A stretch of 64,000 nt of DNA from Perkinsela sp. CCAP 1560/9 (taxonomy: Eukaryota; Protista; Euglenozoa: Kinetoplastea), in the NCBI GenBank assembly GCA_965644495.1, contig CBFFSA010000011.1:248001-312000 (forward strand). Reading direction: 5' to 3'. Positions 1,622-3,658 of this stretch are shown one piece after another. The notes beneath the pieces were generated by a model that saw only the letters and a list, made by a program, of their open reading frames with translations, ran no database searches and had not been told where the DNA came from. A program made the position numbers and the translations under genes. Numbering within the stretch: position 1 is the first letter of the stretch; every line of letters starts with the position of its first letter.

Positions 1622-2174
1622 GAACGGAATTCCGTTGGGTTGAAGGCGTGACCGGTACCTCTGGACGAACGCCTAGCTACTAGCCTCTTTCCGGTTCTAG
1701 GACAGCCAGCGTGCGCGTGTCCATGTTCATCTCATACGTCGATGGTGGGGTTTAATTCACTCAAATGTATCATACCCTTCGCAGTCAAAGCTCATAGGAA
1801 GCTAGTCCTAGTGGACGTGAAGATGGTAAACCCACTGGCCCCGTCCTACGTGGACAAGGAGGCAGCTGAGCCCTCCTTCACCGTGAGGCAGGCTGAGCAC
1901 CTCAAAAGGCGCACTCACGAGGAAATGGCGGGGGCCAGGGAGATGGATTTCTTCCCTTTGGCCTTCACCACGTACGGTGTCCCCGGCCCCGAGACCCTCC
2001 AGTTTCTAAATCTGGTCGCTCGGAAGGCCACCGGCGAGAAGAATGGTTGCCTCAGGCATTTTATCATGGCAATCGGGGTAGCCATCCAAAAGGGGAACGC
2101 CCAGATAGCGCATGCCGCGGTACAAAACTGGTACCGTAGGGGCGTGCGCAAATGGGCTCGGGGGTTGACAAAAA

Positions 2175-2213
2175 AAACTTTAACGATAAAGATACTGTTT
2201 CTGTACCTTATTG
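2175..2213 (+). other. Retro-copied spliced-leader (mini-exon) sequence
   Basis: AAACTTTAACGATAAAGATACTGTTTCTGTACCTTATTG (39 nt). The last 19 nt match the kinetoplastid SL 3' consensus CAGTTTCTGTACTTTATTG at 17/19. It is followed by UTR-like sequence, not a GT donor. Confidence 0.8.
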
Positions 2214-2252
2214 ATTTATTTCCTTTTTCTTCCCTACACCATCTTCCAGACC

Positions 2253-2699
2253 ATGGGAGGGCACCCCCCTCAAATACACACTTTCTTGTCGGCATCCCCC
2301 CTCCCTCTCTCGTCCCATCATCCGTCTGCGCCGTATCCCCCCACCTCGACCTTCCGTGTCAGCGCGCTTGTCGTTCTGTTGTTTTCCTCTCTTGCGTCCC
2401 CCACCCCCGTGCCAGCAGCCCAAAGTATTGTATACTTGCTCAAGGGGTGGGGGCAGAGGTCCAGACCGATGGGCTCGGGCGTCGTTTCTCCTTGTCCCCG
2501 CGTCCGTCCCGCCATGTCCCTCTTCCCGCTTTTTGCCCTCGGCGTGACGGCGGCTATGCGTTTCGTCTCCTCCAAGTCTCCCACCCTCGTACAGCAACTC
2601 AAAGTATCTTATACTGCTAACGGGGTGGGAGCGGAGGTCCTGGACCACATGGGCCACATGTGCGGACGAGCCGGTCAGTGGGGACGCGTCAGTCGGTAG
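2253..2699 (+). pseudogene. Processed (retro)copy of an unidentified host mRNA
   Basis: ATG 40 nt after the SL. C-rich 5' part and G-rich 3' UTR like CDC48/CWC22. Internal ~65-nt repeat at 2401-2467 and 2581-2646, probably frameshifted. Confidence 0.55.
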
Positions 2700-3658
2700 G
2701 GCGTAAGTGGGGGAAGGGAAGTGAGTGTGGTGAGGGGAAGGAAGTAGGGGAAGGAAGGAAGTAGGGTGAAAGGTTTTAAGTGGTGGAAAGTTCGAAACGT
2801 AGATATAAACATTAGAATCAATACTACTGCCCCTAATTATTCGCAAAAAAAAGCTCATACTGTTACACGAAATGTGATTCGAAAGGTGTTGCTAACTTTC
2901 TTTGCATAACGGTTCCTTCGTAATGAAAGATTCTAATACATTATTAGAATTTATTCCAATATTATAAAAATCGTTTTCATTCAGTCGGATGAGTTGGTAC
3001 AAAATATTCCATTTTCACAGATTTTTCTTTACATTTGCCGTGTTTGATATTTAAAGTTTTTATTCAGTTATTTTCAAATGGACTACAGTTATTTTACGAT
3101 TGTTGTGTATCTACTCTATGAGTTTGTACACTCAATACGACGCCGTACTACATACTATCTGATGATTCTGCCTAACAAAGCATTTTTATTATGAAACTCA
3201 TGATACATTTTGTCTTTCGCTCCTATCTGATTTTTTAACCATTGTTCTCATATCGATTTACACTTGTCTTTACTTACATTGTACTATTCATTGGAGACTA
3301 TTCCTCTTTGTTGCGGTTTTTATGTTATCTATTATTAGACTTTTTAGACTCAATACTGCCTGATGATTCTGCCTGATAAAGCATTTTGTTTATTATGAAC
3401 CTCATGATACGTTCGTCTTTCGCTCCTATCTGATCACCCGCGTACATTTTCGTTCCCTATTTTACCAGTAACACTAGTAACCCCACTAATTGGGGTTTCG
3501 TTTTCACTAGATTTTTATCAACCTTATTCAGATTATCAACCTTAATTCAGGCAGAATTAATGAAAGTGTAATTAAAAGAGGGAAAAGATCAAGCGCTTAA
3601 ATTCTATTCTAAAACAAGACGTTGCCATTTTGGTAAAAAAGCAGTATTCTATGTGTCT

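Follow-up and report, generated by a model that had tools for sequence, protein, structure and literature searches.

A chimeric retrocopy in Perkinsela that joins an R2-like retrotransposon tail to a spliced-leader-headed repeat, and its probable origin by template jumping

The window analysed here is a stretch of 64,000 nt of the kinetoplastid Perkinsela sp. CCAP 1560/9 (contig CBFFSA010000011.1, positions 248,001–312,000, forward strand). Plain coordinates below are positions in this window, its features lie on the plus strand unless stated otherwise, and genome-wide searches were made in the organism's own 21-Mb assembly (G000). Its subject is a single insert of 1053 bp at 1797–2849, in which the 3' end of a retrotransposon (family A) is followed by a DNA copy of the spliced leader (SL) and by the body of a second repeat (family B). 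A previous reading made from the letters alone (the sequence-only reading) had described one insertion bounded by a 10-bp target-site duplication, and this description was borne out: AAAGCTCATA stands at both ends, at 1787–1796 on the left and at 2850–2859 on the right, without any mismatch, and the exact span with both duplication copies is 1787–2859. Five A's of the terminal A run at 2845–2852 are the tail of the element and the other three belong to the duplication.

The insert interrupts one copy of a dispersed repeat of approximately 240 bp, whose left part lies at 1723–1796 and whose right part lies at 2860–3031. The left part aligns with nine other copies (one neighbour in the window and eight elsewhere in the genome) as far as CTCATA, and all nine are uninterrupted at the insertion point, where CAGTCAAAGCTCATA passes directly into TTGTTGCACG. 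The neighbouring paralogue, at approximately 503–726, is contiguous over AAAGCTCATA followed by TT and is 85% identical to the flanks of the insertion, which agrees with the empty site that had been proposed there. The right part of the host repeat matches 16 places in the genome, and the nine aligned copies (the neighbour and others among L061–L069) are 80–90% identical. None of these aligned sister copies holds an intermediate with only the A part or only the B part at the insertion site. The left junction of the insert is also present in a contig of 413 nt from a public sequencing run, which matches 1700–2055 without any difference.

The first part of the insert, at 1797–2177, is the last 381 bp of family A, truncated at its 5' side, as established by the genome search, by comparison of 3' ends and by domain and fold evidence. 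It comprises the remnant of an open reading frame (ORF) at 1799–2149, a mutated stop codon at 2150–2152, a short 3' untranslated region (UTR) and a canonical run of eight A's (A8) at 2170–2177. At least 15 dispersed places match positions 1–381 of the insert and no more of it, with 91–96% identity, and other copies of the family extend 5' beyond the point at which the insert is truncated. Their 3' ends are uniform: at the eight 3' junctions compared they read GGGCTCGGGGGAYGAC (GGGGGAYGAC), then A8, and then continue into unrelated flanks. This disposes of the possibility that 2178–2849 is a constant 3' UTR of the retrotransposon. The normal stop of the family, in the context CGC TAA TGG, lies 25 nt upstream of A8; the insert has AAA in its place, and for this reason an ORF appears to run through the leader into family B. 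The long ORF at 1742–2620 was accordingly rejected as a real gene, being an accident of the lost family-A stop.

The full family-A element, reconstructed from two long copies (L057 and L058) with later insertions set aside, measures approximately 4.7 kb. A match to the reverse transcriptase (RT) domain RVT_1 (31 bits, cut-off 29.6) is found at L057:6533–7003, and its continuation lies at L057:6979–8427. Its C-terminal part carries the motifs CxCG...H...C, RH, PD and D-V-T-V-V-N-P-L-A-P-S-Y, which are conserved in 11 homologues. A structure model of the last 233 residues (mean predicted local distance difference test, pLDDT, of 85.6) was used in a fold search, in which the top seven matches in the PDB were all R2 retrotransposon proteins (E 2.4e-7, template modelling score, TM, 0.68), followed by other PD-(D/E)XK nucleases. 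A search by sequence against solved structures gave no match, and none of the 15 homologues recovered by a homologue search is informatively named. On the strength of the modelled fold, family A is best described as a predicted autonomous R2-like retrotransposon without long terminal repeats (non-LTR), with an RT followed by a CCHC motif and an R2-type restriction-like endonuclease, in agreement with the claim that the first part of the insert is the endonuclease-coding 3' end of a retrotransposon. Its membership of the CRE clade, also claimed, is unproven. None of the eight 3' junctions lies in an SL RNA gene, and no family-A copy abuts an SL apart from the chimera.

At their 5' ends, two diverged relatives of family A (78% identity; C5:107602 and C11:24963) begin with CAGTTTCTGTACCTTGTTG directly followed by AATCC, which indicates that the family-A lineage is also SL-headed; L057 and L058 retain only the last four bases of the SL. 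The pattern search for family-A 5' heads was mostly noise, with controls as frequent as hits, and only two of its rows, at 5' ends that had already been matched, were used. Both long copies are interrupted by insertions of 2.4–2.6 kb (2500–5116 in L057 and 3226–5622 in L058), and the one in L058 has inverted ends (CTGTGACCCCCCCCTTTAATATGGACA...), like a DNA transposon with terminal inverted repeats.

The second component is the leader. A pattern search of the assembly found the SL exon of this genome, 38 nt long, as AACTTTAACGATAAAGATACAGTTTCTGTACCTTGTTG followed by GTATGAG in eight SL RNA genes, spread over six contigs and preceded by GCCCTTGTT. Two of them form a tandem pair with a spacing of 297 bp (C1:661,3xx and 661,6xx), in which AACTTTAACGATAAAGATACAGTTTCTGTACCTTGTTG is followed by GTATGAGAAGC, and a 5S ribosomal RNA gene (99 bits) lies approximately 0.7 kb from the nearer member of the pair (L003/L004, G000:C1:659816-663132). 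The DNA copy in the insert, at 2176–2213, agrees with this exon at 36 of 38 positions; the two differences (T at 2196, A at 2210) occur in this copy only, and the first two A's of the leader are shared with the A8 run. Judged by the SL RNA genes, therefore, the sequence in the insert appears to be the organism's real SL. The sequence-only reading had recognised an SL-like exon here but made it 39 nt long (2175–2213): its identity stands, its length does not. The leader continues in the insert as ATTTATTTCC instead of the intron GTATGAG of the SL genes, and it thus looks like a processed junction. The SL string was not found in the literature searched.

Family B follows, with a body of approximately 630 nt at 2214–2844 and its own tail of five A's (A5) at 2845–2849; the same end, GCAAAAA and then a duplication, is found in the solitary copies L028, L040 and L041. 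The body consists of a pyrimidine-rich leader, a chance ORF at 2253–2699, an internal repeat of approximately 75 nt and a G-rich 3' part. The A8 run, the pyrimidine-rich leader, the ATG at 2253, the G-rich 3' part and the terminal A run are all present where they had been placed beforehand. Approximately 74 candidate places in the genome were found for the family, in several subfamilies with 77–98% identity, and many places match positions 374–1053 of the insert alone: 96–98% on C3, C24, C26 and C29, and 83–91% or 77–78% in the subfamilies found elsewhere. Forty of the 74 were scored, and all the distinct 5'-complete copies among them (23/23) carry the SL in their DNA, with no polypyrimidine/AG acceptor in its place in any of them.

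The part behind the leader had been taken for a captured, trans-spliced host messenger RNA (mRNA) with a parent gene, and it had been proposed that a search with 2214–2845 would find this parent, with an AG acceptor at the leader junction. The search returned only SL-headed repeat copies; no SL-less parent gene with a polypyrimidine tract and AG acceptor was found among the 40 of 74 places scored, a coverage that leaves a hidden parent possible. Nor does the sequence behave as a coding gene. In 13 of 16 full copies the ORF of approximately 150 codons that begins at ATG 2253 is uninterrupted; family B is A-poor, with stop-free runs of 96–212 codons in five of the six frames, and the differences between the 98% and the 77% subfamilies fall on codon positions 1, 2 and 3 in the proportion 36/24/30, with no excess at the third. 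The coding-gene interpretation was rejected on the grounds of these flat codon positions and the A-poor composition. By these sequence measures, family B would be a non-coding, non-autonomous retroposon of approximately 630 nt plus leader. No host gene was captured, and so the locus is not evidence for the SL-guided route of gene duplication that had been suggested.

Solitary family-B insertions end in GC plus five A's and are surrounded by duplications of 8–13 bp that start with an A run, as in L028 (AAAAAAAATGAA), L041 (AAAAAAATCTAAA), L040 (AAAAAAAC) and L054 (AAAAAAATAGA). Several copies carry additional material at the 5' end: L041 has a partial SL and then a full SL inside one duplication, L035, L037 and L053 have partial-SL repeats, L036 has a tail fragment of 23 nt and poly(A) ahead of the SL, and L050 has an inverted SL copy. 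These extras are explicable only by template changes, and not by nested insertion. At least 10 of 18 independent family-B insertions form part of head-to-tail chains in which poly(A) is joined to the SL of the next element. In L050 (G000:C82:1-2216), just 3' of a family-B copy that ends at 716, the inverted SL (CAACAAGGTACAGAAACTGTATC) abuts the forward SL that heads the next element, an arrangement that looks like the footprint of a snap-back or a strand switch. Copies and chains of family B are often found near contig ends (L051, L047, L050, L080; C10, C82, C25) and have at their borders an A-rich motif like CAAAGACAAGAAAAAAAGAAAA, which may be a preferred target or the tail of another element.

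SL-derived sequence is in fact widespread in this genome. Nucleotides 6–18 of the SL are present at approximately 413 places, as against 30 for a control pattern, and many of these heads have A runs just upstream. The first two to four bases of the leader vary (ATCTTT, TCTTT, GACTTT and others), with DNA-encoded heads often starting ATCT, TCT, GACT or CTCT rather than AACT; this may reflect modified cap-adjacent nucleotides that were misread or skipped, or untemplated additions by the RT. Approximately 88 of 96 pattern matches are dispersed elements that open with SL nucleotides ~12–38 and continue as GTACATTTTGCTAGCCCTTCC (for example L001, L002, L005 and L006, near position 1500); they show GTA after the leader, as the SL gene does, and then diverge from the intron. 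These elements are a further SL-headed family, with a leader shortened at its 5' side. Four identical SL heads with the same upstream flank of 20 nt recur every 5,093 bp at G000:C1:2477613-2492925, where an SL-headed element is thus part of the unit of a tandem array. Within the window, the minus strand of 965–1725 is a mosaic of short repeat modules, at least five in number (units of 289 bp, 69 bp and approximately 80 bp), each of them multi-copy elsewhere; its tail, TTCTCCCTCCCCCTATTAATTGC followed by nine A's, resembles that of family B, and the mosaic is probably another chain of retro-pieces, situated between the two copies of the host repeat.

The question, then, is how the two families came to share one duplication. 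The genome search splits the insert at its positions 374–382: family-A places match only 1–381, family-B places only 374–1053, and the two are found together nowhere else. A pattern search for the A-tail/SL junction likewise returned no second example in the assembly; apart from the insert itself it matched a single A-rich site, unrelated, where contig C25 ends. The chimera itself, as a fusion of a retrotransposon tail with the copy of an SL-headed RNA, is confirmed by the presence of two separate repeat families inside one duplication. This duplication surrounds both parts, and there is none around A or B alone; it is of the same type as those of solitary family-B insertions, yet it encloses A too. 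Each part has the tail that is usual for its family, A8 for A, as in its other copies, and A5 for B, as in its solitary insertions.

These observations are probably best explained if the insert is a bipartite chimeric retrocopy that arose in one integration event, with the RT copying first B and then, after a template jump, A. Target-primed reverse transcription would have begun at a nick in the A run of AAAGCTCATA, the target, with the 3' end of a family-B RNA (GC followed by A5) as its first template. This RNA, which would have carried the leader as RNA, would have been copied end to end, up to the 5' end of its SL. The enzyme, presumably an R2-like one, would then have jumped, with an overlap of approximately 2 nt of A/T pairing, onto the extreme 3' end (A8) of a family-A RNA, of which 381 nt were copied. 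Finally, the complementary DNA would have been joined to the far side of a staggered break, giving rise to the 10-bp duplication. The jump fits all the numbers because A8 is the complete A tail of the family and the first two A's of the SL overlap with it, and it accords with the behaviour of R2 enzymes, which use 1–2 nt of pairing to take up a further template at its 3' end (PMC8594491). It was one of two mechanisms offered by the sequence-only reading (there a jump of the RT from an mRNA, at its SL 5' end, to CRE RNA), and it is probably the one to be preferred.

Several points weigh against this proposal. The A/SL junction is taken from the assembly, since none of the public-run contigs listed spans 2177, these contigs being short and ending inside repeats; one possible public RNA run held none of the stretch, and the footprint is read from DNA sequence. 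The private substitutions number 7/373 in A, 4/617 in B and 2/38 in the SL, a weak and sampling-dependent difference that is compatible with an older A part; at these counts the comparison is underpowered and does not appear to separate the ages of the two parts. A search for the element whose enzyme mobilises B, made with the last 90 nt of family B, matched family-B copies only. Finally, the proposal does not account for the way in which an SL-headed DNA copy, with no AG before its body, would acquire a leader again when it is next copied.

Among the alternatives, the one that fares best, unlikely as it is, is that of two successive insertions, either a 5'-truncated A followed by a B inserted into its tail, or a B followed by an A inserted just 5' of the SL. 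Family B prefers targets that start with an A run, which makes older poly(A) tails plausible targets, and private changes are slightly more frequent in the A part than in B. If A came first, however, B would have had to integrate without a duplication exactly at the boundary between A8 and AAAGCTCATA, whereas the duplications of solitary B, at 8–13 bp, reach into non-A sequence. The number of A's is also informative: the A8 of family A and the AAA of the duplication make 11, and the A5 of family B brings the sum to 16, which is the number observed, eight before CTTTAACG and eight after CGC. There is therefore no room for a duplication around B alone, and the observed arrangement of eight plus eight differs from the 11 plus five expected even before any duplication is added. 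If B came first, A would have arrived without a duplication of its own and next to an SL that it does not target, given that elsewhere the sequence 3' of A bears no relation to the SL. The lack of an intermediate among the aligned sister copies counts against either order.

A second alternative, somewhat less likely still, is that the insert was copied from the read-through transcript of an earlier composite locus in which B stood right behind A (a 3' transduction), and was truncated at its 5' side on arrival. Such a transcript would give the same final structure, and polycistronic read-through transcription is the rule in kinetoplastids. Nevertheless, the assembly holds no other junction of A8 with an SL-headed B, and at the source locus, too, A and B would have had to come to lie side by side without a duplication, which is as improbable there as under the first alternative.

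The other mechanism of the sequence-only reading supposed that a family-A transcript ran into a downstream SL exon, that the donor of this exon was trans-spliced onto a B precursor RNA, and that the fused RNA was retroposed. The order of retrotransposon, SL and spliced body is the one that such a fusion would produce, but the proposal is highly improbable on several counts. It requires a family-A copy that ends exactly at nucleotides 1–3 of the SL in an SL gene, while GCCCTTGTT is what lies upstream of the exon in the true SL genes; family A does not have its insertion sites in SL genes; no source locus with an A-tail/SL junction exists apart from the insert; and family-B copies carry the SL in the absence of A, so that the leader of B needs nothing from A. 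Least credible of all is an assembly artefact in which two repeats were mis-joined at an A run, for although both parts are repeats inside which short-read contigs break, the run that they share measures no more than 8 nt, an independent contig bears out the left junction, and a wrong join would not be expected to leave the host repeat continuing on either side of the insert, together with a perfect 10-bp duplication.

If the jump from B to A is accepted, what is its significance? Chimeric retrocopies are the main genomic evidence that the RT of a long interspersed element (LINE) changes template in living cells, and the literature examples checked come from mammals and a fungus (PMC2104539, PMC4476161). 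In the present lineage the SL marks the true 5' end of an RNA to the nucleotide. Together with the single duplication and the empty sister sites, this exact marker makes template jumping of the R2-like kind in vivo readable from sequence. The locus displays the geometry known for R2 in the test tube, in which the first template is complete and the acceptor is entered precisely where its 3' end lies. The event belongs to a known kind, the template-switch chimeric retrocopy, and, if the explanation is right, its footprint of an R2-type end-to-end jump in vivo is a very clean one.

More unusual than the single locus is the general occurrence in this genome of retroelements headed by the SL. As a tentative extension, which we consider somewhat more likely to fail than to hold, it may be routine for the R2-like enzymes of this organism to copy a leader-capped RNA over its whole length and to pass from there to the 3' end of a further one. 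Should this be true, both the duplication-bounded chimeras and the long poly(A)-to-SL chains would have been built in vivo by routine jumping, and the present locus would be the cleanest natural footprint of R2-type serial template jumping. Several families of retroelements, the non-coding family B among them, would then acquire the host SL as a regular part of their life cycle. No description of such an SL-acquiring life cycle was found for this group.

Four known systems offer points of comparison. The closest in outcome are the duplication-flanked chimeric retrocopies that have been ascribed to LINE template switching in Magnaporthe (WEIRD/MGL/Mg-SINE) and in mammals (U6/L1) (PMC2104539, PMC4476161). 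As in those cases, copies of two unrelated RNAs are fused head to tail in the same orientation, both parts also exist independently, one duplication surrounds the whole and an A tail lies at the primed end. The present insert differs from them in that the first template, B, is complete up to the 5' end of its SL, and in that the jump would have met the acceptor at its very 3' terminus, with the canonical A8. In chimeras of the U6/L1 type the LINE itself is the 3' part and is copied first; here, by contrast, it lies on the 5' side, and the enzyme would belong to an R2-like family and not to an L1-like one.

A second system is biochemical. The R2 RT performs serial jumps in vitro: once it has reached the 5' end of a template, it continues at the 3' end of another, with 0–2 bp of pairing, and it shares with the process proposed for Perkinsela the end-to-end copying, the small pairing overlap and the chains of several templates (PMC8594491). 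That work, however, describes a property of a modified insect enzyme, while the jumps proposed here are deduced from genomic footprints in a protist.

The third comparison is with the retrogenes with relict spliced leaders that are well known in dinoflagellates (PMC6050394, PMC5585692). There, as here, an SL encoded in the DNA at the 5' end marks the copy of a processed, leader-bearing RNA. The dinoflagellate cases are host protein-coding genes recycled through their mRNA, whereas family B is a non-coding repeat family headed by an SL of the kinetoplastid type; the literature searched contained no report of SL-headed retroposons in kinetoplastids.

The fourth system lies within the kinetoplastids themselves. 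In trypanosomatids, the CRE-clade elements SLACS, CZAR, CRE1 and CRE2 occupy sites within SL RNA genes. They resemble family A as non-LTR elements, with an RT followed by CCHC and a C-terminal restriction-like endonuclease, that inhabit an organism with trans-splicing. Family A, unlike them, is dispersed among unrelated flanks, and its link with the SL is of another kind: the leader is found at the 5' end of the RNA, as in the relatives at C5:107602 and C11:24963, and not at the site of insertion.

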